DNA of 63,732 nucleotides, the filler included, from Octopus bimaculoides (taxonomy: Eukaryota): NCBI RefSeq assembly GCF_001194135.2. It is 8 parts of 5 records of this genome, joined end to end, with 100 filler letters (N's around TTAATTAATTAA, not from the genome) between each part and the next. Parts side by side here need not be neighbours in the genome. Positions count along the whole stretch, not along the records: positions 1 to 19,939 come from NC_068981.1; 7 more parts are not named here. One strand, given 5' to 3'. The notes beneath the pieces were generated by a model that saw nothing but the letters and a program-made list of their open reading frames with translations, had not been told where the DNA came from and searched no databases. A program made the position numbers and the translations under genes. This document shows positions 1 to 44,926 of the stretch, one piece after another. Each line of letters begins with the position of its first letter. Within the stretch, counting starts at the first letter, position 1.

Positions 1-289
1 CCCGACCTTGCTCCTTCAGACTACCATTTGTTTCGTAGTTTACAGAATCATTTGGGGGGCATAACTTTCGCAAGCCAGGAGGAGGTCGAAACTGACATTT
101 CTGAGTTCATTGCTTTGAAACCAAAAGAGTTTTACATTGATGGGATTAAAAAGCTTGTAAATAGATGGAAGGAAGTCATAGATAATCAGGGAAAATACAT
201 TGATGATTAAATTTCAATTAGATATAACATTTGATTACTTGTTTTCTTTATTCAAAATTCGGACAGAACTTATGGGATGACCTGATGTA
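1..289 (+). mobile_element. 3' end of a mariner (DD34D) transposon, with right TIR
   Basis: Frame 1 reads PDLAPSDYHLFRSLQNHLGG...GIKKLVNRWKEVIDNQGKYIDD* (stop 208-210); TIR-like end ...ttatgggatgacctgat followed by (g)ta. Confidence 0.9.
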
Positions 290-385
290 TATATTGAAAA
301 AATATTTTGAAAAGAAGTAAGAAATTATAGAATAATGAAGGAACCCAAACAAATAAACGAAAATACCAATGTTTAAGATGATACA

Positions 386-626
386 CAGTGGCGGACTGGC
401 CAGGTTGCGAGCTTGCCCGATGGCAAGTGAGCCCCTGCGCCATTAGAATCCATATATGGGGGACCATCTCCTCAAGTTTGAGAATTTTTTATTCACTCCT
501 GGAAGAATGCATTAATTATTTCAGCCTAGCTGTGTTTGTAGACAGTTGAAAAGAATACATTTAACAAACAAAAAAAATTAAATGATAGCATTGTAGTTGC
601 GGGTGGGCCCCCTTAGGCCGCCACTG
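386..626. mobile_element. Small hAT-like MITE
   Basis: Termini CAGTGGCGGACT / AGGCCGCCACTG (11/12 inverted match); GATACA flanks both ends (imperfect target duplication in CA-rich context). Confidence 0.6.
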
Positions 627-947
627 GATACACACTATTACAACTAAGACAGTGAAAAGATCACCATAAGAGGGCAGTATTAATCAATTCGGTCAACAAA
701 CCCCACTCTATAGCAGCTGACCACCTGATGGGTTCAGAATTTATTGAGGAGAGTTACCTCTTGAATGAAATAGAACAAAAAGATGTACTACCATCCTTAA
801 ATCGGCTGAATGAATGGCAAATAAATCCAGCACCACCACACACACCTCCATCCCCATATTACTACCATTTCTTCCTGTACTCTCATCACCTACCTCCCCC
901 TACCAAGTACATATATGTATCTGTAAATATGCAAACGCAATTCATAC

Positions 948-1025
948 CTAGTGTCTCCAGTTCAGAATTCTCTGTCTCCTCAGCCTCAGGTTCTAACTCG
1001 TCTGGTATCGTATCCTCTTCGAATT
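948..1025 (-). CDS. Secreted acidic protein, coding exon 6 (78 bp, (E)FEEDTIPDELEPEAEETENSELETL); gene continues beyond window start
   Basis: tttcctccatttcaattttctag|AATTCGAA...GACACTAG|gtatgaatt; phase 1-1; paralogue of exon 5; no stop codon reached within the window. Confidence 0.87.
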
Positions 1026-1631
1026 CTAGAAAATTGAAATGGAGGAAAGTTATTATTCGAAGTTTTAATACTAAATATTTAAAGATCTTTTTCTTTTTGT
1101 TATTTGAATATTTGCCTTCATACTGGTAAGAAGGGATTCACATCCCTCTGATACATCCAATAATGCAGTATCACCTGATGAAATGAATCAATGATGATGA
1201 TGAACCAGATGCCCGCTCAAAATCATGTAATTTGTGGAANNNNNNNNNNNNNNNNNNNNNNNNNNNNNNNNNNNNNNNNNNNNNNNNNNNNNNNNNNNNN
1301 NNNNNNNNNNNNNNNNNNNNNNNNNNNNNNNNNNNNNNNNNNNNNNNNNNNNNNNNNNNNNNNNNNNNNNNNNNNNNNNNNNNNNNNNNNNNNNNNNNNN
1401 NNNNNNNNNNNNNNNNNNNNNNNNNNNNNNNNNNNNNNNNNNNNNNNNNNNNNNNNNNNNNNNNNNNNNNNNNNNNNNNNNNNNNNNNNNNNNNNNNNNN
1501 NNNNNNNNNNNNNNNNNNNNNNNNNNNNNNNNNNNNNNNNNNNNNNNNNNNNNNNNNNNNNNNNNNNNNNNNNNNNNNNNNNNNNNNNNNNNNNNNNNNN
1601 NNNNNNNNNNNNNNNNNNNNNNNNNNNNNNN

Positions 1632-1680
<49 letters not shown>

Positions 1681-1684
1681 CACA

Positions 1685-2365
1685 TAGGGTGCGGTGAATA
1701 AATTGACATCCAAATTATGCAAAAATGAAAATAACACTAACAACTCATTTTAACAGATATATTTACCAAAATTGCATAAAAATATCTTGAAATGCTAAAG
1801 AGTAAATTTATTCAATAAAATCGCCATTGGCTTCAACTACTGCCTCCAGATGACTTCGGAATTTCCTGCATCTCTTCTGGACGGTCCATAATACTGCCAT
1901 AATCCTTGCCTTCAGTTCATCTTTGGTGTTGCAAGGAGTTTTGTTGGTCTCTCACTCAACTGCACCCCACACATAATTATCAAGGGACTTGCAGTCTGGG
2001 GAGTTAGGTGGCCAGATGTTAGGGGTGATGTGGTCGCATAAATTGTCTGACAGCCATGACTAGGTTCTCCTGCTTGTGTGGCATGGTGCAGAGTTTTGTT
2101 GCCAGACATAGAGTCTTCTAGCAGCCACCATCTTGACCCAGGGCAGCACTACCTTCCCCAAGCACTTGATGTAGCTCTCTGTGTTGAGTGTGAGACCATG
2201 TGGGAAGATGAATGGAGTCATGACGTCATCACTAGTGATCATTCCAAACGCCATGATATGATTGGATGTTTGATTGTTATCACTCTCGGTACATGTTTTG
2301 GGGACACAAAAAGCCAACGGTAGTTCTGTGTGTTCACCATCTGATCCTGGATAGATCTGCATAAA
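1685..2365 (-). mobile_element. Tc1/mariner maT-type (DD37D) transposon, 3' half, pseudogenised
   Basis: Minus strand QDQMVNTQNYRW...VMTPFIFPHGLTLNTESYIKCL...WQQNSAPCHTSRRT*SWLSDNLCDHITPNIWPPNSPDCKSLDNYVWG...VEANGDFIE*; 37 residues between catalytic positions 2 (D to N here) and 3; in-frame stops. Confidence 0.88.
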
Positions 2366-2645
2366 ATTAAGACTAGCAAACGACAACCGCCACCCAGAGT
2401 GTCAGATTACTAAAGGAAGATGACAAGGCTACTAAGACGATAGCAACACTTGGAGACCCGCATTCTATTTCTCACTACCTAAAGAAATCCAAATAACAGT
2501 ACTTGGTCAATGAAACATTTGTCAACGGATGACATGCGGCTTCGTGCCGTACGAAGTCGGCCACCGCAGCTTTTCAAATAGCCCGGTTCACTATTTCCTG
2601 TTGGAGGTTGGTCTGGAACGCAAACAAAGAAGCAAAGAATATATT

Positions 2646-2705
<60 letters not shown>

Positions 2706-2740
2706 CGTGTGTATGTAAACATATACATTTATAAATACAC

Positions 2741-2770
<30 letters not shown>

Positions 2771-2771
<1 letters not shown>

Positions 2772-3933
2772 TCAGGTTGGTGCAAAGGTAATGGCCGATG
2801 TTTTAGAAAACAGTTTTAGACAGTATTTTTTTAAATTGTAGCTCTTGCAATGTTTTAAGAATATAACTCAGTAATTTATACATTTTCCTTTCAGATTCTA
2901 ATTGTATTGGTCATAATCTTCTGCTATATTCACACCCATGTTCCTCCTATCTAAAGACCACATTAGACATGTCTTCCTCTATGAGTTTCATAAAGGTTTC
3001 AATGCAAGCACAACAGCAAAGTCTTTTCAGAGAGTTTATGGGGATGATGTAGTGAGTGAAAGAAGCTGCAGGAGATAGGTTCCGCTTCAGAAGTAGGGAC
3101 TTGAGTTTGAAAGACGAGCCAAAAGAAGTCGTTCAAAACAACTTGATTCTGAATAGTTGGAAGCTGTTGTCACAGAAAATCCAACCGCTACTTGTAGAGA
3201 ACTTGCAGAACAGTTTAACGTAGCTCGTACAACTGTTCTATCTCAACTGAAAAGGATCGCAAAGGTTTTAGTGGTTGAAAATGGGTCTCCAGAGAATCTG
3301 CAACAGCGTGTTGTTTGTTGTCAGTCATTGCTTTCACGACATCTTAAGAAACCATTTTTCGGGAGGCTTGTTACAGGTGATGAGAAGTGGATTCTTTACC
3401 ATTACATTAAACGTCAGCGATTGTGGATCAGTCGAAGAGAAAGACCTGCTCAACAACCAAGAAGAGGACTTCATTCAAGGAAGATCACGTTGAGTGTATG
3501 GTGGGATATTGAAGGAATTGTTCATTACGAACTGTTAGGCAACAATCAAAGAATTGCTGTTAATCTCTACCATGATCAACTTCATCGTTTGAAAGCTTTG
3601 ATCAGAAAGCAACCTTGTTTAATCAACAGAAAGGGTGTCATCTTCCACCATGATAGTCCTTGTTTGGGATGTTGCTTCATCCTTCATATTCTCCAGACCT
3701 TGCTCCTTCTGATTATCACTTGTTTTGGGGACTACATAACCATTTGAATGGTCTTAGGTTGACATCAAGGGAAGAGGTTGGAAATAAGTTGGATTCATAT
3801 TTCGCATCAAAACCTAAGCAATTTTACAAGTGTGGCATTTATAAGCTTGTTGACAGATGGAATGAAGTTCTAGAAATCAATGATCTTTTAATAGAGACCT
3901 TAAAATCGGCTACTACCTTTGCACCAACCTGAT
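2771..3933 (+). mobile_element. Near full-length mariner (DD34D) element with both TIRs; transposase disrupted
   Basis: TIRs atcaggttggtgcaaaggtaatggccgatgtttta (2771-) and taaaatcggctactacctttgcaccaacctgat (3901-3933); ORF from ATG 2938 MFLLSKDHIRHVFLYEFHKG..., TGDEKW, HHDS, YSPDLAPSDYHLF; stops and frameshifts. Confidence 0.95.
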
Positions 3934-3987
3934 TGATATATATATATACATAAATACATACATACATAAATGCATACGTATGTATGT

Positions 3988-4044
<57 letters not shown>

Positions 4045-4100
4045 NNNNNNNNNNTGTGTGTGTGTGTGTGCGTGTGTGTGTGTGTGTGTGTAGTTCATAC

Positions 4101-4178
4101 CTGGTGTCTCCAGCTTTAAATTCTCTGTCTCCTCACCCTCAGTCTCAAACTCATCTGATATCATATTCTCCTCGAACT
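4101..4178 (-). CDS. Secreted acidic protein, coding exon 5 (78 bp, (E)FEENMISDEFETEGEETENLKLETP)
   Basis: ttctccctttttatttctctag|AGTTCGAG...GACACCAG|gtatgaac; phase 1-1; about 63/78 nt identical to exon 6 by hand alignment. Confidence 0.87.
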
Positions 4179-4794
4179 CTAGAGAAATAAAAAGGGAGAA
4201 ACCATTTGTATAAAATGTTAATATTAAATATTTTAAGTGTTTTATACTTTTAGAATATTTGTGAGGCAATGCAAAAATCATTCACAATAACACAACGCAT
4301 ATCTCTTCCTTAACGGGTAAATACAAGAATATTTATGAACAAGTACTTCAAAATCTACAGCTTCTTTAGCTTGATAAAATCGCCACACATTTAAAAATAA
4401 TTATTACAGCACTTGGTTTTCTTATTGAACCCTTCTTTGGCAGCTTTGAGCGTCTATGATTTTTCTGCAAGCAAGGTGTTCACATAAAATATGCCTACAT
4501 AAAATACATCTATTTTCAACTGATATCTGTAAGATACCAGTTAAAAGTAGATACGAAAAATAATAAAGACTCTACTGAGAGATAAATTCATACATTTTCG
4601 TTGATGTATTCAAATTCAAGCATTGTATTTTTACCTTTTAACATTTAAACTACCACTTCTTCTCAACTATAAAAACACATATTTAAAGACAGAAAAAACA
4701 CATGCATGCATTCAATCAACCATTACAGGCATTTATGTATAAATACTTACCTGCGTACGTACATGCATGCTTTCACACATGTAATTTATGTATG

Positions 4795-4847
<53 letters not shown>

Positions 4848-4989
4848 GTACACATGCATGCATGTATGTATGTATGTATGTATATGTATGTGAATGCACG
4901 TAAGTATATATAAACATATATATATATACACACAAACACACTGTGATAAGGTGCTATGTCCGGATTGTCGGCAGCCAGTGGTTTGAAGT

Positions 4990-5410
4990 TCACCAGGAGA
5001 ACATACCTCTGGTGACTGCAATAAGACAATTCGTATTACCTGTTAATAAATACTGCAGATTGATAGAGAATGTGAAGTTTTTCACGAAGATAGAGCTGGC
5101 AATTACGGGCGCTGCGTGAATAAGGTGGTTTCCTGTCAATGATGGTCCATTTGATGCTGAGCGTCTTATCCTAGAAGTCACGGATCCTCCAGAGGAATCA
5201 AGACAAAGAAGTCGAATTCTCTCAATCCCTGCATCTGATCGAGTGCATGTGCTGTGTGTATCAGCCAAATCATTGGCTGTCATGTCCATGTAGTGCCTTG
5301 TAATGACATTGGATGGTGTGAGAGTGCCTCTGTAGACTTACAGCCCTCGAGAGGCAAGATCCTCCTAGAGGGAAGCCGGTAGGGTTTAGGCAGTTGCAGG
5401 TTGGGGTTGG
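4990..5410 (-). mobile_element. Penelope-like element, GIY-YIG endonuclease remnant
   Basis: Across frameshifts: CNCLNPTGFPLGGSCLSRAV-VYRGTLTPSN...RHYMDMT...IKWTIIDRKPPYSRSARNCQLYLREKLHIL...YCSHQRY, matching the PLE CNC-CPLxGxC / VY / YIG / C-x-H layout. Confidence 0.75.
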
Positions 5411-6884
5411 GGGTTGTAAGAGTGTATGTTTGTGTCCGTAGTAGCGTGACCCTCCTTGACTAATGGCAGCCTATCTTTCGGTAGCCATCTTGGACTTCTT
5501 GGATCCCCCCATTCAGCGTCCCAGAAGCCTGAAAGAGTCGGGTTCCGTTAGGAGCCAGCGAAAGTTGAAGTAGCACAGAACCGAACCAAACTGAAATATA
5601 GGAGAATTGATTTGGAAGACGAAAATGCAGTTGTGTCATAAAATGAAATGTTGCATTAAAAAATACGATTCTGGGTAGTTTTAATAGTCATTCTGTCATC
5701 AGAACATCCGATTTGACAATACTACGCAGTTAACTCTTACTCCATCCTCCCTTCCTTCTCCTCTCTATTTTTCCTCTCTGTCTTCCTCTCATCTATTTAT
5801 CCTGAGTTATCTGTACATCCCTGTTTAAAGAAATAGATTAGTTTGTAGCAATGTCCGATCATTGTTTTATAGCCCGTTGACCTCTAAAATCTTCGTTGGT
5901 TAAAGATTGCTAGCACTCGGTGTGTTTTCACTCTCTTCAATGATGCATAACTGAGAAGGTCAATCCACATCTTGTGGTATTTTTTTCTCTGAGCCAAATT
6001 TTTAGTCACCTGAGGAAAATAGTCTTTCGATTACATAATCGAACTATTCATCAATAAAAATGCGTTTGGAATAGCATCTTTAAATTTTACATTATTTATT
6101 GATTTACTCGTATCCCCGATCCTTTATTTTTAAGTTAGCTTTGTATCTTTTTATCTTATTGGTACCTTTTCCTTCAATATATGTATTTTTTATATACTGT
6201 TGCTACATTAATCTATAAATATTGTTCTTAATTATTAATCCTAAAATTTTAAATCCTCCTTACTGTTGGGCATCTATTTCTAGCATTTTAGCTCTCATTA
6301 ATGGTTGGTAAACCACAGCAGCAAAGCTCTTCCTAACCACCCAAGACCGATATTTATCTATTTAGCTTTGGTCTCCCTACGTCCATTTGATTACTCTTAC
6401 CCCCCACCCTCCTCGATAGCCTACCTTCATAATATGTCAATTGCTTTATTTCTCTTTGACTTTGTCATTCCCTATGACCTTTCACCCTGACACTACCGTG
6501 TGTGTGTGTGTGTGTGTGTGTTTGTGTGTGCGCGCGTGTGTGTATGCGCATGTGTGCGTGTATGTATGTACTTCGAAATTCGCAGGTTCTTTATCTTGAT
6601 TAAAAATACACATTACAAATAATTACTACTACATTTTGATATGTGAATGCTTCAGTAACAATTTTGAAAAGTCACCATTTTTCTCAAAGATATTATCTTG
6701 TTGCATAAATCTTACGAATACAATGTTTCTACGTAGGTTCTTATGTATGTAGTATGTACACATTCATATATATACATATAGACACACACACATGGTGCGG
6801 TTCTTTGTATGAGTATACGAATGTGTGTCTCACTGTGTCTCTATATGTATGCACATGTTTTGTGTGTGCATGTATAACACATAC

Positions 6885-6962
6885 CTGACATTTCCATTCC
6901 TGTATCTCGAATCGACTCGGTCTCAAGCGTCATCGTCTCAGGTATAATACTCTCGTCCGTTT
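6885..6962 (-). CDS. Secreted acidic protein, coding exon 4 (78 bp, (E)TDESIIPETMTLETESIRDTGMEMS)
   Basis: cttccatttatttatgtag|AAACGGAC...AATGTCAG|gtatgt; phase 1-1; same length as, and gapless alignment to, exons 5 and 6. Confidence 0.82.
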
Positions 6963-7044
6963 CTACATAAATAAATGGAAGAGACATATTATTACAAATG
7001 CTATAATACCTAATGTTTAATGTATTTTTCTTATTTCTTTTTTC

Positions 7045-7245
7045 TTTTACTTGTTTTAATAATTTGACTGTGGCCATGCTGGAGCACCGCCTTTAGTCGA
7101 ACAAATCGACCCAGGATTTATTCTTTGTAAGCCTAGTACTTATTCTCTCGGTTTCTTTTGCCGGACCGCTATGTTAGGGCACGTAAACACGCCAACATCG
7201 GTTGTCAAGCAATGGTGGGAGGGGGGACAAACACAGACACACAAA
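7045..7245 (-). mobile_element. tRNA-derived SINE family B, 3' part
   Basis: Matches 63430-63732 copy (gactgtggccatgctggagcaccgcctttagtcga...aagcctagtacttattct); runs into an N gap. Confidence 0.85.
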
Positions 7246-8613
7246 TGCATATATATATNNNNNNNNNNNNNNNNNNNNNNNNNNNNNNNNNNNNNNNNNN
7301 NNNNNNNNNNNNNNNNNNNNNNNNNNNNNNNNNNNNNNNNNNNNNNNNNNNNNNNNACACACACACACACACACACACATATATACTAATAAAAGTGAAG
7401 TCCAATTTTGCTTGCTTGTAATGTTACACAGCCAAACTGGCACATAATGGGAAAATACTATGAATTAAGTTTCCCCTAAAATGTTAATACGAACAGAATA
7501 CAATAAGTTTCGCGTAAATCGGACCAGTAGTTATTGTGATATTCGGGGTTTGGGGGTATAAATACCCAAAACGGTGCATAATGGGAAAATATTCCGAATA
7601 TAACTTCATCCTGAAAGAGAAGAAATTCTAACCTTTCGATTAGACACAGTGATTTGACAACGAAAAAATACGATTTGTTTTTTACAGTAAATGATTCTAT
7701 TTTCGCTTTTATTAAACACAATACTTTAATCATTTAGAGATATTTTTAAGTGAATGTGATTTCAAAAATGTAAGTTGTTTGTACAGTAAGTATTTATATT
7801 TTAGCTTTCTTTAAACAGACGATATTTTAATGCTTTTTGAAATTATTCTCAAGTGAATACCATTACAAAACTTTGTCTTAAAACGAAAATGACTTTAAAA
7901 ATGCGGTAAATATTTCATAAAAGATCCGTTCGTAACCTCGGTGTGAAATAATTTTTTTCGATAGGTTTTTTACGAATGCATTCAACATATCTCATCTCCA
8001 AAGATTTGGCTGCTATTTCTAGCACACGCTGCTACCACGTAACAGCTATTTGCGATAAAGGACCCGAAATACCTGTTACGTAGTAGCAGGGCGTGCAGGA
8101 AATAGCAGCCAAATATTTCCTTTTCTGGGTAAGGAGCCGTTTACGCGTGATTTCGATGTCACATTCGTTGAAATAACCAACGGTCACGGGTAGTCTAGTA
8201 TATGACTCACTACTGACCCTTCCATCTACGCACACATCCAAACACACACACACGGCCACACCCACTCATTCACACTCCTGTTACTATAGCTGCTGGCCTT
8301 TCAGAGAGACATTAACACACGCACAAACGCGCGCGCGCACACACACACACACAGATCCTACCACACACACACGCTATCATACTCATACACACAGTTACCA
8401 CCACATGCACACACGCTACCACGCACACAGACATACACACACATGCAGTTACTGTTGCACACACACGCGCTAGCATACATACACACATATACATACCGAC
8501 CATCTTCACACTCTCCTGTCCCAGAAAGCACTTTTTCTCCGCCTTCTACTTCCAGTCACTTCTCCTCTTTCTACTTCCGGTCCTTCTTTCCCTTTGGACT
8601 TTCCTGTTTATTC

Positions 8614-8650
8614 TGTTTCCGACGAAGAGCTATACTCGAAACGTAAAACA
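8614..8650 (+). ncRNA. Degenerate minimal hammerhead ribozyme motif (PLE terminus)
   Basis: TGTTT-CCGACGA-A-GAG(CTATA)CTC-GAAAC-GTA-AAACA; helix I TGTTT/AAACA; core U4 changed to C. Confidence 0.6.
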
Positions 8651-9068
8651 ACAACTCTCTTCTTTCTCCGAGCGTCTTATTAATACATTACTTGTGCTAC
8701 GACCGCACGTTTGTTTCTTCTTCTTCTTCTTCTTCTTTGTTTTTTGAATTGGCTATATATGTGTATGTGTGTGTATGTATGTATATATACACATGTATAT
8801 ATATGTATGTATGTATATATGTATGTATATATGCTTGTATGCATGTATATATGTATATATACACATGCATATATATGTACGTATGTATATATGTATGTAT
8901 GCATGTGTGTATGTATGTATGTATGTATGTATGTATGTATGTATGTATGTACATAGGTAATCTCTTGGTTGCTGGAGATATGTATGTTTATACACGTGTA
9001 CGCTTAAATATATCTACAGATGTGTACTAAAGATTGCTAGATACAGAGATATATACGATAATGTTGTC

Positions 9069-9341
9069 AGTTTCAACAGAATTGATAAGGAGCATTCTGC
9101 CTCACTGGCGGACCTAATATAAAAACTAAAAGACAATGGAATAAAATATAGTATTATTTGGTCCATAACAAATAATGCATACCCGTATGAACCCTTTTCT
9201 AGAAATTGCTATTTATGTTCAGAGAAATCCTTATGCATTTTGTTGAATGAAGAGAACTTAATCAACGAATACTCCGAAAGATTAATAAGATGTAACCATA
9301 GACCTAAGTACACATTTTCACTATATAACATGAACAATTAA
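9069..9341 (+). mobile_element. Penelope-like element, endonuclease C-terminus
   Basis: SFNRIDKEHSASLADLI*KLKDNGIKYSIIWSITNNAYPYEPFSRNCYLCSEKSL...NLINEYSERLIRCNHRPKY; typical PLE W-x-I, C-x-LC-EK and C-x-H tail. Confidence 0.8.
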
Positions 9342-10279
9342 TTAATTAATTAATGTGACTATCAATAGCTAGCAAGATTAATTTTTGCTGAAATGTTAAG
9401 GTCAATTTAAATTTCCGATTGTTTGTTTTGTTCTATTCTGATCGCATGTATATTTTATGGTTTTATTTAATGGTGTTTTGTCATCGGTGTATCACATTTT
9501 ACTTGTTTCTTTTATTTTATTTCTGATGCCTTGTACTCTTCTTTTTCTATTGCTTATATGAAAAGAATTCTTCATCGTATCTTATCTATGGAGACGCATA
9601 GTTCTCTACAATTAACAAAACGTATTGTTATAGAAATAAACGAAAGGGCAAATCAAAACGAGGTACTTTATGAGAAGTTACCTGAAGAGGCACCTCTGCG
9701 CCTACGCTGCACCACGACTCTTTGTACAACATCTCCATCTGCAAAGTACCGGAGCATGATGGGTCGAAACGATCGTAGTGAATGAATAAAATATAGAAGA
9801 TAGTGAATTCTATTTCCTTTTTATCCTCACTTAAATGTAGATATTCTGTTAGAACAAACTATACTGCGGTAGTTACCACGAGAAAAACTCTCATATTGGC
9901 TTTTGGTGCAAAATGCACTCTTGTTAATATCGCTGGCGGGAAGGTAAATCCCCCCCTTACACACACACCTCCAGCAGAGACTACCAGATCATGTGATTTT
10001 GACCTTCTTTGGACTTGTCAATGATGGAGGCTTGGCCGCTAGAAATAGCAGTGAATCATCTCCTCACCAGCGATATATAAAATAAGAGCTAGAACAGGCA
10101 CTGGTGTTGCGATTAGCCAGTGAGCTTGATAAAGAACGTCCGCGTGTAAGTTGGGATGAATATTACCTCTCAATATTAATACTGCCTCTGTCGTTAATAT
10201 ATATCTATTTTCTTTCTCTAATATTTTTATATGTTCATGTGTGTGTGTGTGTGCGTGCGTGTGTGTGTGTAATTCATAC

Positions 10280-10345
10280 CTTCCATCTCCTGTTTCATAT
10301 CCCGCATCAGCTCGGCTTCAGGCATCTCCTCATTTGACTCATATT
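10280..10345 (-). CDS. Secreted acidic protein, coding exon 3 (66 bp, (Q)YESNEEMPEAELMRDMKQEME)
   Basis: ccattttatttctgcag|AATATGAG...GATGGAAG|gtatgaatt; phase 1-1, open, Glu-rich; flanks resemble those of exons 4-6. Confidence 0.82.
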
Positions 10346-10949
10346 CTGCAGAAATAAAATGGATGAAACACATTATTTAAAACTTTAATATTTAATATTT
10401 CATGTTTTCATGTTATTGTTTCTAAATTACTGTGACTAAGCAGAAAGACTATGTACACTCAGATGTTCTGCGGATGTGAACATCTCTTCAATAACCACTG
10501 TGTAGGAAAATATATAAGGTCAGCTACTTAGAAACCTGCAACTTTTTGTTGATTAAAAATGTTAGCAATAAAAATTATTGAAGCGCATAGGGCGATGAGC
10601 TGGCAGAATCGTTAGCACACTTAGCGTCATTTCGTCCTTGCGTTTGTGTTTTCGTTTTGCTAAGGTGAGTAGTGGTGGTGGCGACGGCGGTGGTACTATG
10701 GATTTGTCGGTTTTGTGTGTGTGTGGTTTCGGTGATACTATTGTGATTGAGTGATTCGTTCAGAGCTGTTGTAACTTTTTAAAATTTTATATTATCTTTT
10801 TCTTTTCTTTTATTTGCTTAGCTAGTCCTCCACCTTCCAAGATATTTTCACGTCGGAAAGATTCTATGCAGGAGAAGGTAAATTTGCATGTGTGTCCATG
10901 TATGTATACTTAAAAAGAGGAGCTAGAGAGAGAGCCATAGGGAGGGAAT

Positions 10950-11335
10950 TATCTTGGATATTTTCCTGAGTGGTGGGTTTTGGTTCTGTTGCTGTGGGTG
11001 TCCTTCTGGCTATTGTTGATCTTGCTGTTTCTACGAGCCTTGGTGTTGATGTTGCTACAGTTGTTCTTGTTCCCTTCTATGCTGGTGCTCTTGTACTCTG
11101 TTGGCGCTGTGCTGTCGACTGTAGTGGAGAACATCTCTTTCCTGCATTTTATTGAGAACAGAAAGCTCTCAATCTGTCCTCCGAACCACTCTGGTGGTAT
11201 CTTGGCTTTTTGTCCTCAACCACAACGCGCATCTCCATATATTTTCCACCTCCTTCGGTTACATCTGCAGGAGGATCTCCACTGTAGTCCCAGATCAAAA
11301 CTCCATCTCCGTTCGTTTCACTTCGAAGGACCTGT
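10950..11335 (-). mobile_element. Decayed LINE ORF1-like fragment (L1/Tx1 type)
   Basis: VLIWDYSGDPPADVTEGGGKYMEMRVVVEDKKPRYHQSGSEDRLRAFCSQ*: Y-x2-S-x4-R-x4-C keeps the CX2CX4HX4C knuckle spacing, followed by T/S/P/A-rich low-complexity coding. Confidence 0.45.
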
Positions 11336-11379
11336 TACTGCTTTTCAAAGTGATACAGGGCGGGGGAATGGTAATCGCA

Positions 11380-11468
11380 TTTGGTGGAAGTTGAACTCAG
11401 AATGTAAAGTCGGAACAAACGCCGCTGAGCACTTTGTCCGGCGTGTCAACGATTCTGCGAGCTTGGCA
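11380..11468 (-). mobile_element. tRNA-derived SINE family A, head fragment
   Basis: Reverse complement gagct-gcagaatcgttgacacgccggacaaagtgctcagcggc...ttctgagttcaa matches copies at 21615, 35236 and 46679. Confidence 0.7.
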
Positions 11469-11544
<76 letters not shown>

Positions 11545-11545
<1 letters not shown>

Positions 11546-12076
11546 GGATGCAGTACCAGGCAGTGGCTCTCATGGCTTCTGATCTTAACTGATTGGAAGT
11601 GTTATCATGTACATTGTTTTGTCTTGGTATAAAAAGATGGGCTACAGCAAATATTCTGCTTAATACCACAGATTTNNNNNNNNNNNNNNNNNNNNNNNNN
11701 NNNNNNNNNNNNNNNNNNNNNNNNNNNNNNNNNNNNNNNNNNNNNNNNNNNNNNNNNNNNNNNNNNNNNNNNGTTCTTTGGGGTTTGAATAATTCACCTT
11801 TGGAAACATGGGTGTTTTGCTCAACATCCTTAAACAAACCTTATTCAGGGACCTTTTGAGCGGGATGGGCTACTCGACCTGAAGAAAATTCTAACTGGGC
11901 CCCATCTGCAAGGTCATGCGCTGTTTATCTTGATATGAGATCACCATGTCGCGTACATATGGTTGTGATGCATGTGCCTGGTGTACCCTTATCAGACGGG
12001 TAGTCATGATGAGTATAATGGGCTTCGTATATTTTACCCCAGTGTCACTTTGATGGCATGCACTGCTCTCTCACTC
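11545..12076 (+). mobile_element. About 510-bp non-coding element flanked by (AAT)n, copy 1 (contains an N gap)
   Basis: gatgcagtaccaggcagtggctctcatggc...ctgctctctcactc(aat)n; collinear with 13360-13864; no tRNA A/B boxes seen. Confidence 0.85.
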
Positions 12077-12097
12077 AATAATAATAATAATAATAAT

Positions 12098-12281
12098 AGT
12101 AACTGCAGAATATGTGGTGATGAAGAAGAAACAATAAATCATATTGGCTCTGGTTACCCAGTCCTGACTAAGAGGGAATATATTCACAGACACGACAGGG
12201 TGCAGGTAGCAAGCCCACTAAGCATGTAAGGCTTCAGGAGCTCCAACAAAACTTGTGATAAAGAGAAATAATAATAATAAT

Positions 12282-12350
<69 letters not shown>

Positions 12351-12892
12351 AATAATACTATGGAATGACAACAGAAAAAAGATGGTATAGGCATACGCCA
12401 GAAAAGGGCATAGGAAATGAGAAAGTATCCACACTCTGGGATATGCCAATACAGACAGATAGAGAAATTAAGGCCAATAGGCCGGATATAGTTGTCAGAG
12501 ATTACTAAGAAAAAATGTTTTCTCATTGATGTATCAGTACCAACAGATGACAACGTTTTTCTAGAAGAAACGGAGTAACTTTCAAAATACAAAGATCTGG
12601 AAATAGAGGTAACTCGAATGTAGAGCCTAAGAACAGAAACAATTCCTATCATAGTAGGCGCATTAGGTATGGTTAAAAAAAAACATTCAGACAAATGCAT
12701 AATAAATACACCAGGACTTACAAGTATATATAACATACAGAAGATAGCACTAACTAGGCACCGCACACATCCTACGTAAAACACCTTCAATACAGTGAAA
12801 AGAAGAGCACTATAATAAACCACAACACTTACCCAAGGCACATGGAGCTACGCTCGGTAGTGCAATAAAAGCAAGAGATTAAATTAATACTA

Positions 12893-12895
<3 letters not shown>
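12098..12895 (+). mobile_element. R4/Dong-like RLE non-LTR retrotransposon, 5'-truncated 3' end
   Basis: CRICGDEEETINHIGSGY (CCHC knuckle, last C to Y), REYIHRHDRV, WYRHTPEK, LWDMPIQTDREIKANRPDIVV, CFLIDVSVP, KYKDLEIEV, PIIVGALG; stop 12796-12798; about 100-bp 3' UTR; (AAT)n on both sides. Confidence 0.9.
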
Positions 12896-12967
<72 letters not shown>

Positions 12968-13128
12968 CTGCTCTACTATAGGCACAAGGCCTGAAATTTT
13001 GGAGGAGGGGACTAGTCGATTACATTGATCCTAGTGTTTCACTGGTACTTAATTTATCAACTCCAAAAGGATGAAAGACAAAGTCGACCTCGGCGGCATT
13101 TGAACTCAGAACGTAAGGACAGACGAAT
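12968..13128 (-). mobile_element. SINE family A fragment
   Basis: ggcacaaggcctgaaattttgg...aaagtcgacctcggcggcatttgaactcagaacgta is the reverse complement of the family A body and tail. Confidence 0.8.
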
Positions 13129-13210
<82 letters not shown>

Positions 13211-13357
13211 AAGAAGAAGAAGAAGAAGAAGAAGAAGAAGAAGAAGAAGAAGAAGAAGAAGAAGAAGAAGAAGAAGAAGAAGAAGAAGAAGAAGAAGAAG
13301 AAGAAGAAGAAGAAGAAGAAGAAGAAGAAGAAGAAGAAGAAGAAGAAGAAGAAGAAG
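13127..13357. repeat. Compound microsatellite (AAT)n(AAG)n
   Basis: Directly visible; AAG tract 13181-13357. Confidence 0.97.
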
Positions 13358-13359
13358 AA

Positions 13360-13864
13360 TTTCCCTGATGCAGTACCAGGCAATGGCTCTCATGGCTTTT
13401 GATCTTAACTGATTGGAAGTGTTATCATCTACATTGCTTTGTCTTGGTATAAAAGGTGGGCTACAGCAAATATTCTACTCAATACCACAGATTTGCTTGT
13501 CACTTGTTTGACCTTAACTAGTTAAGCATGTCCCTTGGTGGCTGACTATATGTGCAACTCTGATCACGAGCAAGCCATGTGTTGAGAGGAATTCTTTTGG
13601 GGTTTGAGTAATTCACCTCTGGAAACATGGGTGTTTTGTTTATCATCCTTAAAACAAACCTTATTCTGAAACCTTTTGAGTGGGATGGGCTACTCAACCT
13701 GAAGAAAATTCTAAGTGAGCCCCACCTGCACCATGTCGCATACATATGGTTGTGATGTATGTGCCTGGTGTACCCTTATCAGACGGGTAGTAATGCTGGG
13801 TATATTGAGCTTTGTATATTTGTACCCCAGTATCACTTTGATGCCATGCGCTGCTCTCTCACTC
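13360..13864 (+). mobile_element. About 505-bp non-coding element flanked by (AAG)n/(AAT)n, copy 2
   Basis: cctgatgcagtaccaggcaatggctctc...gctgctctctcactcaatagtaataat; same family as 11545-12076. Confidence 0.85.
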
Positions 13865-13865
13865 A

Positions 13866-13931
<66 letters not shown>

Positions 13932-14131
13932 TGTAATAATAATAATAATAAGAAGAAGAAGAAGAAGAAGAAGAAAATGTAATAATAATAATAATAGATA
14001 GATAGATAGATAGATAGATAGAAGAGTTCTTTACTTTTACAAAAGTAAAGAACTCTTCTATCTATCTATTATATTTCTGCTGAGTTACTTCAGTCCTTTA
14101 TATGAACTACTACTACTACTACTACTACTAC

Positions 14132-14208
<77 letters not shown>

Positions 14209-14209
14209 T

Positions 14210-14250
<41 letters not shown>

Positions 14251-14635
14251 TATAATAATAATTATAATAATAATAATAATAATAATAATAAGTGTGGAGG
14301 TTTACATATAAAGAGTGATGAAAAAAGAAGAAAGAACTATACACAGCATACATTAAAAGAAATGTAGTATACATAATATAAGCAATAAGNNNNNNNNNNT
14401 AATAATAATAATTATAATAATAATTATAATAATAATAATAATAATAACAAAGTGTGGAGGTTTACATATAAAGAGTGATGAAAAAAGAAGAAAGAAGTAT
14501 ACACAGCATACATTAAAAGAAATGTAGTATACATAATATAAGCAATAAGGAAAAACAATTGTGATATGGTGGGAGGGGCCTCCTGACACAGGAGGACCAC
14601 TGGGGATGACCGAAAAACCTCACCATCCAAGATCG

Positions 14636-15447
14636 CCCTACTCTCACTCCTGTATGTGCTGGGTCTCGAGCTATTGCTACGAGACTGAATATTTCAAGGA
14701 GCATCCCGCATGAACTAGGATGTGGAAGGTTCGAGTCGGTTTATGCGGACGACGTCACCATAATAGTGTCGGACGTCTCCGAAATCGAGGTGATCAGCAC
14801 TGCTCTAAGAGAGTACGGAGCGGTGACAGTGAACAAAGATTAACTAGGAGAAGTCGATATATCTGCAACTCGGAACCTAGAGAAGCAAGTCCATGTCGAC
14901 CGATAGCATCGGATGGAGCTTGACAGAAGGACCGGTTAAATTGCTTGGGGACTGGTTTTGTCCGGACTTCCAGGTGGACCAGAACAAGGAGAGATGACAA
15001 GCAGGATGGTCAGTTTCACCCAGAAATGAGCAAAGACGAAGTTGTCCCTAAAGAATCAGGCGGAAATAGCAAATACGTACATCGCTTCTGTCATCTACTA
15101 CCGCCAACCGTCGTCCCTTACTTTGCTTTGTGGTTGATCAAGCTGGAGTGTTCGCTCTCCTGCTTTCTGTGAAAGAGGCATGTTCTACTCGTCAGAGAGT
15201 CCATCTGTTGTCAGCAGCCGCTGAGTGGTGGACTGAGTATTCTGTGACTAATGATGTACAGGCATGCACTGAGGTTGCGACATCTCCAGCGTTTCCTTAA
15301 TGATAGAGGCGACCATCGCTACCTGGAAGCCGTCTGTAAAATGGCCAGTTTCGGACCCGTTTTCAGGGGCTGCATCGTTGCAATGCACAACGGCACCTGC
15401 TCGGTGGTCAAAGTAAATGATCATCTATTGGAACCGTTTAGAGTCGC
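14636..15447 (+). mobile_element. L1/Tx1-clade LINE reverse transcriptase remnant
   Basis: LLSLLYVLGLELLLR, SVYADDVTIIVSD (YADD at 14742-14753), GPVKLLG, YIASVIYY, RHALRLRHL, then DHRYLEAV..FGPVF..VKVNDHLLEPFRV; many stops and frameshifts. Confidence 0.85.
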
Positions 15448-15738
15448 NNNNNNNNNNCATGAATTTATTATTTTTGTTTTTACATAGATATTTTACCTGT
15501 GAATTTGCGTGTGTAAACTAGGAATTCATACAATGAGCTTCTCTGCCCTATGTGTACAGAAAACACTCGGCGAGAAATGGAAGAAAATTTAAAGAAAGAA
15601 AGAAAAAAAACAACATAATAATAAATAAATAAATAAATAAACGACTCTTTCTATTCCATCTTATTTTATTATACGGTCGGTTAGCGATCACTAAACGATG
15701 CACTCATGTTTAAGTAATCTGGAAACAGTTATACTTAC

Positions 15739-15771
15739 GAGCCGAGCCTGACCTCACAGATATGAAGAACA
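15739..15771 (-). CDS. Secreted acidic protein, coding exon 2 (33 bp, (V)FFISVRSGSA; end of signal peptide)
   Basis: aatcttatatttcag|TGTTCTTCATATCTGTGAGGTCAGGCTCGGCTC|gtaagtat; phase 1-1; completes a 21-aa signal peptide ending G-S-A. Confidence 0.78.
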
Positions 15772-16277
15772 CTGAAATATAAGATTACATGTAATGAGTT
15801 TAATAAAGTTTAATAAAAACATTCATTCTTAGACTAGACACTGGGCATATTCTTTATTAAGAAGGGAAAGCATAATACTCTTTGAATAAATAAATTTACG
15901 TGAGTATAGCCTTGGAAATGATTCCAAATATATCAACGGCGCTAGGAACACTGTATGAATTAATTTACAGACTCAGAAGAACAGAAAGAAGTAAAATCCA
16001 TTCGCAGAACTCTGAATTCCACTCAACCGGCTCCTAAATTCTAATGAAAGACATATCTTCCATGGATGAGACAGGGCATAGTTACTCACAGAAGGAGGTG
16101 AAGTTAATACAAGTCAATGAAATAATTGTCTGTTTTACAATGTTACTGCTTCTAAGAGTGAGAAACTAACACAGCATAGAAATGCCAGTTTGTACCTAGA
16201 CAGGCAGGGTTGTTAAAGTACATACCGTTACTGTTTATCCTTAAGAATAAACAATTAACCCATAAGCTAGTATGTGT

Positions 16278-16328
<51 letters not shown>

Positions 16329-16828
16329 CGCGCGCGCGCGCGCGTGTGTGTGTATATTACTCTTTTTATAATTTGGTTGACACCAGAAACTTTAAATTGC
16401 TCTGTATTTAATAGACAAAGGTCTATATTTTGTGTATAAGACCTTAGCAAAGTGAAGCAATGTGATGAGAAGAATTAACAGACCTGATACAAATTCTCTG
16501 ACTAAAGCGAATAAAAAGATCAAGTTTTGTTAACACAATACTAATAATAATGAATGCTCTCAGTTGCATAATTTTATATCTAGGTTGCAAAACTTTTGCA
16601 TAGGGATACATCGCTTTAAGGAGAAGGTCATAAGCTACAGGACTCTGATGATTGAAAGCAAAATTTAGATCTAATAGTGCAGAGTGTATACTTAGTGTTT
16701 CTGTAATGAAGAAGGCAAAGAGAGTGAGAGAGAGAGGGTGGGGAGAGCTTATATATATATAAGTGGTAGCGAGGGAAAAAGCAATTACGAACAACTGTAT
16801 TCTGTGTTTATTTTCATGCAAAGGCATC

Positions 16829-16871
<43 letters not shown>

Positions 16872-18507
16872 NNNNNNNNNNNNNNNNNNNNNNNNNNNNN
16901 NNNNNNNNNNNNNNNNNNNNNNNNNNNNNNNNNNNNNNNNNNNNNNNNNNNNNNNNNNNNNNNNNNNNNNNNNNNNNNNNNNNNNNNNNNNNNNNNNNNN
17001 NNNNNNNNNNNNNNNNNNNNNNNNNNNNNNNNNNNNNNNNNNNNNNNNNNNNNNNNNNNNNNNNNNNNNNNNNNNNNNNNNNNNNNNNNNNNNNNNNNNN
17101 NNNNNNNNNNNNNNNNNNNNNNNNNNNNNNNNNNNNNNNNNNNNNNNNNNNNNNNNNNNNNNNNNNNNNNNNNNNNNNNNNNNNNNNNNNNNNNNNNNNN
17201 NNNNNNNNNNNNNNNNNNNNNNNNNNNNNNNNNNNNNNNNNNNNNNNNNNNNNNNNNNNNNNNNNNATGTTTTCATTTAGTGTCCTATTTATAGGACAGT
17301 GGGACTAAGTTCGTTGAAGCCATCCGGAATCTAAACATGTCGGCTAGTTTTGAATAAATCATCGCACATTTTTAGATATATACGTGCATTGGGTCTTTCT
17401 CTTTCGCACATCAGAGAGACAACAATTTTGGGAGTCAAAAACGATGCTTTCATTCTAAGAATGATCTCGAAAAGCATGTTTGTTTGTTTTTTTTAAAATT
17501 TAAACGACTTCACTTTCCTAATTACCTTTCCTTTGCAATGATCAGAAAGAACGCGGAAGGACAAGTTATCAGAGTTGATAGAATTACCCTGGAATCACTT
17601 TGTTTTTTTTTTTCAGTGTACAAGTTGTACACTGCTTTTTCCAGGGTTGGAAACAGTAGAATTTTCTTCTTTATAATTCCTGGCAGAAAAACGTAGAATT
17701 ATAATATATCCTGAAGTACTACAATAGACACTGGAAAAAATAACTGATAAGAAAAATATTTCATTTAGAGCAATTGAATCGGCTAGGGTAGTATTTCTTT
17801 TGAAAAGGCAGTTTCTCCGACAAAAATAGTTTTTATTTCCGGTTCTATGTTTGTTGCACACTTGTATGAAGCTCAGCTTAGGCAATCTTCTGAACTACTT
17901 ATACACAACAATTTCAAGAGAATCCGCATTTATGGATTAAATGAGGTGTTTCAGCATCTTTTAAAACAATTTATCGAAAATAATGAATCCATGTAGCTAG
18001 TACATATATGATTAAACAGTTGTAATCGTGTGGATGGCATTCATAGCGTTCATTACAATAATTTAATTTGAGAATGTGATCGCAACTATCTCGAAACGTC
18101 AACCTAATGTGTTTCTTAAACGTTGTTTTCCAAACTAAGCACATAGGACTAATAAATATGAAAAATTCTTAATAAAAAATCGAACTTGAACATAGTCGTG
18201 TTTTTAAAATAAGAAAGTTAGAGAGACAAGGGGAGAAAGAGGGAGAAAGAGGAGGAAGAGGGAGAGAAAGAGAGAGGGAGAGAAAGAAAGAGGGAGAGAA
18301 AGAAAGAGGGAAAGAAGGGGTGAAGAGAGAGATCAGTTTCTCGCTTCATATCACAATATGCTCGTAAATTAACTGACGTTTTTTTGTTTTCAAATTAAAA
18401 TAAAATAATGTGAAACAACGATTGGAAAATCGCCAGAAAGATTGAAATTAAAGAAAGATTAAAATTAAAGAAAATCCCTTTAAGGTTATGTTAAAGAAAT
18501 CACTTAC

Positions 18508-18538
18508 CAAAAGCCACAAGTAAAGCACTCGTCTTCAT
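18508..18538 (-). CDS. Secreted acidic protein, first coding exon (MKTSALLVAF + phase-1 G); exon spans 18508-18541
   Basis: Minus strand: ttcttttctgcacgccgcag|AAAATGAAGACGAGTGCTTTACTTGTGGCTTTTG|gtaagtga; strong acceptor and donor; AAAATG start; encodes n/h-region of a signal peptide and joins in frame to 15739-15771. Confidence 0.8.
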
Positions 18539-18932
18539 TTTCTGCGGCGTGCAGAAAAGAAATGCTTACAAACTTGTATTGTACTGGATATTTAAATAAC
18601 TTTACCTGACCCAAGATAAATATGCAGAAATACATATGTTATTAGAAATGGATCAGTCATCTTTCCTCGCTGACAATTGTTTATTTCAAAGTGACAACTT
18701 ATAATTTCCTTTTCACTCAAAATTTGCTATACATATTCAATAGATTTATCTTGGCACGTGTGATAGAAATATATTGTTTTCATCACATCTAATAACTGTT
18801 ATTTAGTCTCATCAGTTTTAAAAATTTGAACAATGAACTACTCCTATATATTTCATGATTAGCATTATTGAAACCCAAAATACTTAACAGTAATAATAAA
18901 GACTGTTTCAAAAATAGGCATAAGGCCATAAA

Positions 18933-19075
18933 TTTGAGGAAGAGGATTAATCGATTCAATCGATCCCAGTACATAGCTGATACTTTATTTTAACATTGCT
19001 GGAAGGAAGAAAGATAAAGTTGACCTCGGCGATATTTCAGCTTAGAATGCTAAAAGCCGTAACTAAATATCTCGA
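18933..19075 (-). mobile_element. SINE family A, diverged fragment
   Basis: aatcgatcccagtacatagctgatactttatttt...aaagttgacctcggcgatattt matches family A reverse complement. Confidence 0.65.
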
Positions 19076-19192
19076 AGTTCGTTTTTTCTTTTGTTGCTTT
19101 TGTTTGTTTTTGTTTTTTTGCCTGCGCTGTAATGACTGTCAATCCTCCACTCTTTACAATAAATGTTTCTAATTTATGTATGAGATCAGAAA

Positions 19193-19939
19193 TTGCGGGT
19201 ATTACGACTTCTCATAGAGATGTCTCCATATGTCTGTGTGAGCACGAAAGATCTCCTCAGTAAAATCAGTACTTGCAACCACTCCAACGACCTCACAGGT
19301 TGTGTAGTGGGTAGTATGGATGTGATTTCACTCTACCCATCTATAGACATAGATTTTGCTGTGGAGATAATCATTCAGGTGATCTGTGAGAGTGAAGTGG
19401 AGTTCCGCAAGGTCAACACGAGGGAACTGGGCCTCCTCCTCAGGCTAAGCTACGACAGTAACTATTTGGATGACCATGACCTCAGTAGATTCTGCCCCAC
19501 CAGGTTACAGAGGGGAAGACCATCCACCATCAATTCAGCAGTGAAAAAAAGCACCACTGAATGCTGGAGTGACTGGACTGCACCCACCCAAAACCCTGAG
19601 AACAACAATCAGGTGAAGGAAATGATTGCTCACGCAATAGGGGCCAGTATAAAAACCACCTTGAAGAACCACATAGTAAAGTTCAACAAAAAATTATACA
19701 TGCAGGTTCAAGGTGCAGCCATCGGCGTTGGTGTAGCTGGAGATGTGGCCGGCCTCTTCATGACCTGGTGGGACAGAAAACTTAAACATATGTTAGCAGA
19801 ACAGTCCACAATTCTTCTACTTTACAGCAGATATGTAGATGACATTAATATCATAGTTAGGACCAACTCTAGTGACGGTCGTGTAGAAACAGAAAGGAAC
19901 GTAATGGAGAGCATCCAGCAAATAGCTAACTCCATCCAC
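19193..19939 (+). mobile_element. Penelope-like element reverse transcriptase core (open frame, ends at a gap)
   Basis: VVGSMDVISLYPSID, LYMQVQGAAIGVGVAG, LLYSRYVDDINII (YVDD 19832-19843): PLE-type RT motifs. Confidence 0.88.
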
Positions 19940-43420: not shown

Positions 43421-44926
43421 ACCTTTATAGAACTAAAAGATTTTATCATCACACTCGACATACAGCTAGGACAATTCCATCTCCATATAAAGCAGCCAAT
43501 ATACCAAATACATATAAAAGTGAAAGACAAAAGGAAAAATGTTTTTCTCCGTCTAGATCAAGGTTTCAACTCTTTTCTTCCATCAACACTTGTAAAGTGG
43601 TAAGGAGACAAGATTTCAAAAGCTTCATGACCATACAAAATTGCATATGCGCCCCTAAATACTTCGGACCTGACAGAACCAATGCAGTCACCAATGTCTA
43701 CAACTTCTCGTACAAACACTGACAGCATTAGACACTGTGCCGCACGTTGATAATCTCGAAGTGAAATAGCATCATAAAACACAATATCACTCCTATGATA
43801 ATATGAAAATTTTAGCTGAACAGAGTAATGGTCTTTGAGTCATACTTTGACGTTCAAACTGTTACTGTATATCATAGGAAACGAGATGAGGCCTGACATT
43901 AGGTCACTAAACAAGAACATGAAGAACAATAGCAAAAATGTTATTATTATTATTATTTATTTCGAATATTGAAGTTAAGGCATAAACTTGCATTGATAGT
44001 AGTTGCCATTTAATCAACTACAGTTGATTAAAAGAATGAAAAGCAAAGTTAAACACTGCGGGAAATACAGGTTATTTTGTTGGAAATTTTAAGAATTCTG
44101 CCAATCCACTGCTCTATCAACAAGAACAATGTTAGAAACAAAGTCTGTTATAGAAGCAACTTAAACTATGCAAGTGTATGAATGAATGATTTTCTTGTAT
44201 GTAAAATAATTATCACATATGCTTGGCTTCCGTGATGACTCATGAGGAGATAAGATAACTATCACACTTCAAAATGTTGCGATACAGTAGATCGTACTAA
44301 AACAGAAATACCAAGGACTAATCTAACTTCAAAATATTTCTTAGAATAACTCTGTGAAGTATTATTTTCTACGGTATGTAGAAAAATTGCTTCTATCTGA
44401 AGATGATCGTCGTTTCTTTCAAGCCGAAATATTATAATAAGTGCATATCTTTAAAAATATGGAATTTATAGATAAACATTCTCTCATTTGCACTGCTTGA
44501 CTTCGTCTGAAAAGAGAACTTGCTATCAATGCCGACGCATATGCCTTAAGAGAACACGAATGCGCACACTTGTAAACACGCACACTCAGTGTTTGTATGT
44601 ACAATACAAAATATACAACGTCACATGCAAGAGAGTATGACTCAGTCTCATGTAGTATGTTTTCGCTATAATGCGCATCTATAGTGGCAAGCAACCACAG
44701 CTACCCTTTCTGTTAATTTACATTGCACCTAGCAGAATATCGAGGATATGATGGCTTGAAGGAGAGAGGGCTTCCAGAGCACTGAGCTGATAGTACTTTC
44801 CAATTGAATGGACTGGAAAACCTTTAATGAAGTGCATTACTCAAAGACATAATGATGTCCAGGAATGGATCCCACCACTTATTATCATGAGTCCATCAAG
44901 CTAATAACTCTTGTGCATAGATATTA

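Follow-up and report, generated by a model that had tools for sequence, protein, structure and literature searches.

The question raised by this locus is whether six very short open segments, spread between positions 948 and 18541 on the minus strand of a stretch of Octopus bimaculoides DNA, are the exons of a real gene and, if so, what kind of protein such a gene would produce. The stretch, called here the window, comprises 63,732 nucleotides (filler included) from assembly GCF_001194135.2, joined from eight parts, and the segments lie in its first part (positions 1 to 19,939, from NC_068981.1), which is the piece analysed here (19,939 bases, 36.7 % G+C). A first-pass annotation had proposed that the segments are spliced into a hidden gene for a secreted, highly acidic protein. 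Our preferred reading, to which we give a probability of roughly 0.6, is that the minus strand of this piece holds the 5′ part of a genuine gene confined to octopods, in which a signal peptide is followed by glutamate-rich cassettes.

Reverse-complementing the proposed intervals returned the six exons with exactly the coordinates, lengths, acceptors and donors that had been put forward for them:

18538-18508, minus strand: coding part of exon 1, 31 bp, encoding MKTSALLVAF and the first base of the next codon; donor TTG/GTAAGT
15771-15739, minus strand: exon 2, 33 bp, phase 1-1, encoding VFFISVRSGSA; acceptor tatatttcag, donor CTC/GTAAGT
10345-10280, minus strand: exon 3, a 66 bp cassette, phase 1-1, encoding QYESNEEMPEAELMRDMKQEME; donor GTATG
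6962-6885, minus strand: exon 4, a 78 bp cassette encoding ETDESIIPETMTLETESIRDTGMEMS; donor GTATG
4178-4101, minus strand: exon 5, a 78 bp cassette encoding EFEENMISDEFETEGEETENLKLETP; donor GTATG
1025-948, minus strand: exon 6, a 78 bp cassette encoding EFEEDTIPDELEPEAEETENSELETL; donor TAG/GTATGA

The outer limit of 18541 corresponds to the ATG at 18538 plus 3 nt of 5′ leader. Each of the internal exons is preceded by a pyrimidine-rich tract and AG, and the donor of exon 1 scores 8.2; left unspliced, exon 1 would reach a stop after 12 codons. All five introns are in phase 1, the Glu codon at the cassette junctions being split as G/AA or G/AG. Compared with the 78-bp units, exon 3 has lost 12 bp in frame, and exon 5 contains a cryptic internal donor (GG/GTGAGG) at 4137. 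Once spliced, the six exons add up to 364 bases without a stop and encode a peptide of 121 residues, as had been described; the composition given for the part after residue 21 was also reproduced (34 Glu, 6 Asp, 2 Lys, 2 Arg and no Cys), with a net charge of about −36. The exons had further been described as too short to appear in a track of open reading frames (ORFs), which is loosely true, although exons 4 and 5 lie inside six-frame ORFs of 78 and 122 aa.

A scan of the whole piece for open exons with phase 1 at both ends and decent splice sites gave nine candidates on the minus strand, including all four acidic exons (3 to 6), and three on the plus strand. A phase-1 exon candidate at 758-805 (DLRMVVHLFVLFHSR) was left out because it is unlike the family. 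Antisense coding on the plus strand was ruled out, because the exon boundaries would then be AC...CT instead of GT-AG. Since exon 6 terminates in a donor, the coding sequence extends to the left of position 1; the whole cassette-exon gene is probably much longer, with these six exons as its 5′ end alone.

Exons 3 to 6 are homologous to one another, and the homology includes about 70 bp of the upstream intron as well as the first bases past the donor. An nhmmer profile of these exons and their flanks found just these four copies in the piece, all of them on the minus strand and about 3 kb apart. The 3′ intron flanks, which are 68-74 % identical across units, are situated as follows:

10346-10415, minus strand: 3′ intron flank of cassette 3, an AT-rich block with a polypyrimidine tract and AG
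6963-7032, minus strand: 3′ intron flank of cassette 4, conserved between units
4179-4248, minus strand: 3′ intron flank of cassette 5, conserved between units
1026-1095, minus strand: 3′ intron flank of cassette 6, conserved between units

The translations of the four cassette exons were made into a profile, and an exhaustive HMMER search with it against 1.84 billion representative proteins yielded two matches, one of which is a real relative (P0020; E 2.3e-6, in three stretches). This is CAI9715271.1 (UniProt A0AA36AH76), a protein of 238 aa annotated as 'Hypothetical predicted protein [Octopus vulgaris]'; the other match (P0021), an unrelated repeat protein, was discarded as a chance match. 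Repeats EFADNTMPEELESEAEETKNLELETP, EDYTKPEELESEAEVTENLEMETR and EFEENAIPEELESETEEAEDLELETL of the O. vulgaris protein are of the same type as EFEENMISDEFETEGEETENLKLETP and EFEEDTIPDELEPEAEETENSELETL from the window, with a shared consensus of about 26 residues (E-F-x-x-x-x-I-P-E-E-L-E-S-E-A-E-E-T-E-N-L-E-L-E-T-P). A joint profile (A4) scores this protein locally at 248 bits; despite this, word-indexed protein searches with the 121-aa peptide and with a 12-row repeat profile missed it, so that negative results of that method are uninformative for this low-complexity family.

We compared the window with about 99 kb of the O. vulgaris chromosome (OX597814.1:67,386,818-67,486,295, designated L001). 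The exon-plus-flank profile detected at least 13 distinct units in L001, distributed over more than 55 kb. In each, an AT-rich and polypyrimidine flank runs to the AG, the open body is in phase 1 and measures 54, 75 or 78 bp, and a microsatellite comes after a donor of the GTATGAA type. The exons annotated for CAI9715271.1 match these units in position. The O. vulgaris gene models are consensus calls of EVidenceModeler, which combined assemblies from Iso-Seq and RNA-seq with aligned proteins and with predictions by Augustus and GeneMark (PMC10700109); the same exon boundaries were recognised there independently, in a model that may be largely ab initio. Window and O. vulgaris units are 75-83 % identical in DNA over exon plus flank, exon 5 being 77-79 % identical to the L001 exons at 42300 and 43903, and exon 6 being 83 % identical to the L001 exon at 43903-43980. 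For exons 3 and 4, no close counterpart was seen in the 99 kb. Only exon units and transposon fragments align between the piece and L001, and the introns measure from 177 bp to 1.3 kb in L001 versus about 3 kb in the window.

L001 also contains a block of 34.6 kb that is repeated (1-34589 versus 53900-99478) with 99.5-100 % identity and with its middle 8.9 kb inverted, which points to a misassembly or else to a duplication of very recent date. Because the exons of CAI9715271.1 span both copies of this block, the gene model is probably chimeric and its N-terminus is uninformative. The description of the gene as hidden from annotation thus needs qualifying: the family is indeed poorly captured, but one relative had already been annotated, albeit as a fragmentary and probably chimeric model. 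A 78-bp unit at L001 37186-37263 has the same architecture as the others and encodes a basic peptide (VEPKERPTHALRNIILAHKKEMDIP), so that not every unit of the O. vulgaris array is acidic.

Upstream of every cassette exon, in the piece as in all units of L001, a stretch of 60-70 bp is conserved at least as much as the exon bodies, and a CA/TA microsatellite directly follows nearly every cassette donor. Both splicing constraint and concerted evolution are possible explanations for the conservation of the flanks.

Coding constraint was examined in 17 distinct units defined by nhmmer alone (four from the window and 13 from O. vulgaris), each read in the frame set by the aligned donor. In this coding frame there were three stops in 403 codons, versus 34 in each of the other two sense frames, and all three came from a single unit whose donor had been misplaced by the hidden Markov model. 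The length of the unit body was a multiple of three in 13 of the 17, and in the remaining units an alternative acceptor or donor is used. For the five exons of the EFEE type, the ratio of nonsynonymous to synonymous substitution rates (dN/dS) ranged from 0.06 to 0.95, remaining under 1 for each of the ten pairs; with the exons concatenated, the window compared with O. vulgaris gave a dN of 0.18 and a dS of 0.48. These exons are 77-83 % identical between the two genomes and their flanks 67-77 %. Composition and frame are better conserved than sequence. The existence of an O. vulgaris homologue with the same exon boundaries, together with the preservation of frame and the dN/dS values below 1, suggests that exons 3 to 6 are very probably genuine and code for a highly acidic repeat protein, in agreement with the first-pass annotation.

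Exons 1 and 2, when joined, encode 21 residues (MKTSALLVAFVFFISVRSGSA), which can be divided into MK, TSALLVAFVFFISV and RSGSA and which pass the tripartite rule for signal peptides, with a basic n-region, a hydrophobic h-region of at least 10 residues, and small residues at −3 and −1. The intron after exon 2 splits a Gln codon directly after Ala21, that is, at the predicted cleavage site (−1/+1); a clustering of phase-1 introns at signal-peptide cleavage sites has been reported (Tordai & Patthy 2004). A candidate promoter element is situated upstream of exon 1:

18589-18598, minus strand: putative TATA-like box TATTTAAATA, 60 nt upstream of the ATG, as read from the sequence

There is no further ATG between this box and the start codon, which has an A at −3. 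Every ATG-first exon and every phase-1 micro-exon whose splice scores equalled or exceeded those observed was then enumerated, and the joined peptides were evaluated with a simple tripartite heuristic. Exons 1 and 2 were the sole passing pair on the minus strand of the piece; no pair passed on its plus strand, or on either strand of the 99 kb of L001. In second-order Markov simulations of 19-kb sequences, at least one signal-peptide-like pair appeared in 8 of 200. We consider it probable that exons 1 and 2 encode a signal peptide at the 5′ end of the gene.

Regarding the predicted product, the peptide contains 5 Pro, 34 Glu, 0 Val and 2 Lys per 100 residues (P+E+V+K = 41 %), and the 100 visible residues contain two S-x-[ED] motifs, no dibasic [KR][KR] sites and no N-glycosylation sequons. 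Its charge-hydropathy position is far to the disordered side. AlphaFold modeling of the O. vulgaris protein gave isolated, low-confidence helices only, with a predicted local distance difference test score (pLDDT) of 57 and a predicted template modelling score (pTM) of 0.15. Searches of Pfam with the peptide and with the O. vulgaris protein found no family, a PDB sequence search found no relative, and the piece had no match in Rfam. Likewise, nothing relevant was found in the literature on the homologue accessions, the repeat motifs, or Glu-rich or acidic octopus and statolith proteins. The best reading of the composition is that the product would be a secreted, intrinsically disordered polyanion.

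The coding sequence is open at its 3′ end, acidic pro-regions are common among secreted peptide precursors, and the O. vulgaris array holds non-acidic 78-bp units, such as the basic one described above. These three points would be compatible with the acidic region being a long pro-region or spacer, ahead of a bioactive peptide, toxin or folded domain encoded beyond position 1. We nevertheless find this improbable. The 100 residues contain neither dibasic nor other obvious processing sites, in which they differ from the precursors of neuropeptides and toxins, and the succession in O. vulgaris of at least 13 cassettes over more than 55 kb, with no Cys-rich or known domain, argues for a repeat protein.

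A number of points weigh against the gene as we read it. The function of its product is inferred purely from composition. Over 100 unit pairs of the divergent types, mean identity was 65 % for the flank and 57 % for the exon, and substitutions in divergent cassette pairs were even across codon positions; these two results indicate that, outside the EFEE type, there is little constraint on the amino acids. In O. vulgaris some units have degenerated, having lost the donor or the acceptor, which shows that the array is decaying in places. The loss of a splice site in two O. vulgaris units, the conservation of flanks as much as of exon bodies, and the fact that the O. vulgaris model may be mostly ab initio could also be accommodated if the units were pseudo-exons in decay, strung together by gene predictors because they resemble exons, or a non-coding repeat amplified locally. 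This seems very improbable to us in view of the 0-3 stops in 403 codons versus 34 in each other frame, the restriction of indels to multiples of three, the dN/dS below 1 in ten of ten close pairs, and the invariance of AG and GT at the aligned boundaries of nearly all units. Moreover, the copies are co-oriented and confined to arrays, and scattered copies in both orientations without frame constraint, as for a dispersed repeat or transposable element, were not seen in the piece or in L001. Membership in a high-copy repeat family, which the first-pass annotation itself had named as one of the cases that would speak against its proposal, finds no echo in these two sequences: there are only four co-oriented copies in the piece, and those of L001 do not leave the array.

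The assembly must be counted on the same side. The piece contains eight runs of N, and intron 4 (6884-4179) is the only intron that is fully sequenced, each of the other junctions crossing at least one gap; the order and orientation of the exons therefore depend on scaffolding. All of the gaps are intronic and touch no exon, so that their length has no effect on the reading frame. The gap closest to an exon (4045-4054) lies 47 bp beyond the donor of exon 5, within a CA microsatellite, and the one at 16872-17266 is a run of 395 N in intron 1. More cassette exons may hide inside the gaps of about 390 N. On either side of the 10-N gap at 14390-14399 stand the copies of a 152-bp direct duplicate with 97 % identity (14238-14389 and 14400-14549); the gap probably represents an unmerged contig overlap, likely an assembly artefact.

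The remaining points concern exons 1 and 2. The acceptor of exon 2 is mediocre (score 4.9) and the weakest link in the chain, and the thresholds of the decoy test were derived from the observed scores and are hence post hoc. No counterpart of exons 1 and 2 was found in the fetched 99 kb of L001 by blastn, tblastn or the signal-peptide heuristic, and the O. vulgaris model CAI9715271.1 begins without a signal peptide. These facts, the appearance of a signal-peptide-like pair in 4 % of the simulated 19-kb sequences, and the unusual location of a 2.7-kb intron inside the h-region of a signal peptide would all be expected if only cassettes 3 to 6 were real and exons 1 and 2 were a chance pattern, with the true 5′ end lying further upstream, in a gap or beyond 19939. 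The product might then be an acidic repeat protein that stays inside the cell instead of being secreted. We regard a chance pattern as unlikely, since the pair is the sole match and is found on the correct strand, upstream of the cassettes and with a matching phase-1 end; the intron after it coincides exactly with cleavage position −1/+1; the pair is preceded by a TATA-like box at 60 nt, with no intervening ATG; and no match occurred in 2 × 99 kb of real octopus DNA. As for the O. vulgaris model, it is fragmentary and extends across a block that is duplicated and in part inverted, so that nothing can be learned from its N-terminus in this respect. The earlier statement that the N-terminus fits the (−3,−1) rule of signal peptidase is upheld by the heuristic, but the comparison with L001 lends exons 1 and 2 no support.

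If the locus is a gene for a secreted acidic repeat protein, as we favour, it could operate as follows. A TATA-like promoter about 60 nt upstream of the ATG would start the gene, and two micro-exons would provide a signal peptide of 21 residues, with a phase-1 intron at the cleavage site. A series of homologous phase 1-1 cassettes of 66-78 bp would then each contribute one Glu-rich repeat of about 26 residues, giving a secreted, disordered polyanion with a net charge of about −36 per 100 residues and without Cys, dibasic sites or a fold. Its likeliest action would be the multivalent binding of cations (Ca2+) or of basic partners in a secretory granule, a secretion or the extracellular matrix. 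Because the cassettes are phase-symmetric, units can be duplicated, lost or skipped in frame, and such in-frame gain and loss would explain the divergent arrays of this genome and O. vulgaris.

The only family membership that we claim for the window gene is in an octopod family of acidic 26-residue repeats, together with the uncharacterised O. vulgaris protein CAI9715271.1. Both have Glu-rich repeats of about 26 residues, phase-1 exons of 54-78 bp, the same flank and the GTATGAA donor, as seen when EFEENAIPEELESETEEAEDLELETL is set against EFEEDTIPDELEPEAEETENSELETL of the window. The two do not appear to be simple orthologues: no signal-peptide exons were found in the 99-kb locus, and its model is fragmentary.

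Similarities to other repeat proteins are of organisation or chemistry. Genes of the elastin type have cassette exons whose lengths are multiples of three, with a codon split after its first base, and encode a repetitive, unstructured extracellular product. The window exons could likewise be duplicated or skipped in frame, with every junction codon split 1/2, but there is no sequence relation, and the window protein has 34 % Glu whereas elastin is rich in Gly, Val, Pro and Ala and contains Lys-Ala cross-link domains. Starmaker, Aspein, the vertebrate secretory calcium-binding phosphoproteins (SCPPs) and the granins share with the predicted product a signal peptide (predicted here), a strong negative charge, the absence of Cys, predicted disorder and lineage-restricted repeats. 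The window protein is Glu-rich, however, whereas the acidic matrix proteins are rich in Asp and Ser; it lacks dibasic sites and has no Pfam or PDB similarity. In SCPP genes in particular, all introns are in phase 0 and S-x-E phosphorylation motifs are dense, in contrast with the exclusively phase-1 introns of the window gene and its two S-x-[ED] motifs in 100 residues.

In the PEVK and poly-E regions of titin, an intracellular sarcomeric protein, repeats of about 26-28 residues are each encoded by one exon of about 78-84 bp, and P+E+V+K amounts to at least about 70 %. The window product is also Glu-rich and disordered, with a repeat of about 26 residues per exon, but it reaches only 41 % in P+E+V+K, has a predicted signal peptide and shows no sequence similarity to titin. 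Finally, the gene for flagelliform spider silk is built of iterated exon-intron modules in which the introns are conserved at least as much as the exons; in the window only about 70 bp of flank are conserved, and not whole introns, and the protein chemistry is unrelated.

Several other elements occur in the piece. Intron 5 contains the relic of a mariner transposase at 3157-3744 on the plus strand, which continues, frameshifted, into 3660-3929 (Pfam Transposase_1, E 1.9e-16, and a helix-turn-helix domain), as well as an ORF at 2063-2386 on the minus strand with a transposase-like appearance, possibly related, that has no Pfam match. Upstream of the gene, on the opposite strand, there is a reverse-transcriptase-like ORF (19193-19939, plus strand) that is cut by the end of the piece. 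Among named proteins it is closest to hypothetical proteins of O. vulgaris, with 68-75 % identity, which marks the piece as octopod DNA and probably not that of O. vulgaris itself. An exact look-up of four ORFs of the piece returned no record of any of them. An interspersed repeat of about 300-600 bp occurs at 11469-12102 and 13289-13890, in copies that are 81-83 % identical and bordered by long (AAT)n/(AAG)n microsatellites; a further copy at L001 40767-41303 is 90-92 % identical and lies in the opposite orientation relative to the gene.

A wider and more tentative proposal, which we hold to be doubtful, is that the locus belongs to a very large, octopod-specific cassette-exon gene or small gene cluster, with tens of phase-1 exons of 54-78 bp over more than 50 kb, encoding a secreted, polyanionic and disordered protein. 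If this were true, the flanks would be held constant while the exon bodies diverge fast, an arrangement that would permit combinatorial exon inclusion and rapid evolution of copy number, and the product could be an unrecognised matrix component of, for example, the statolith, egg coat, saliva or mucus.

Proteins of this kind are not unusual, lineage-restricted secreted acidic repeat proteins being already known. The family is nonetheless one that standard annotation catches poorly, its sole database member being a fragmentary 'hypothetical protein' without a signal peptide. If the gene is as we read it, the locus would be a clean case of symmetric phase-1 micro-exons building and remodelling a repeat protein. 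It would also add a taxon-restricted family of secreted proteins to the gene catalogue of cephalopods, and the extreme charge of its product would make it a candidate cation-binding or matrix component of octopus secretions or statoliths.

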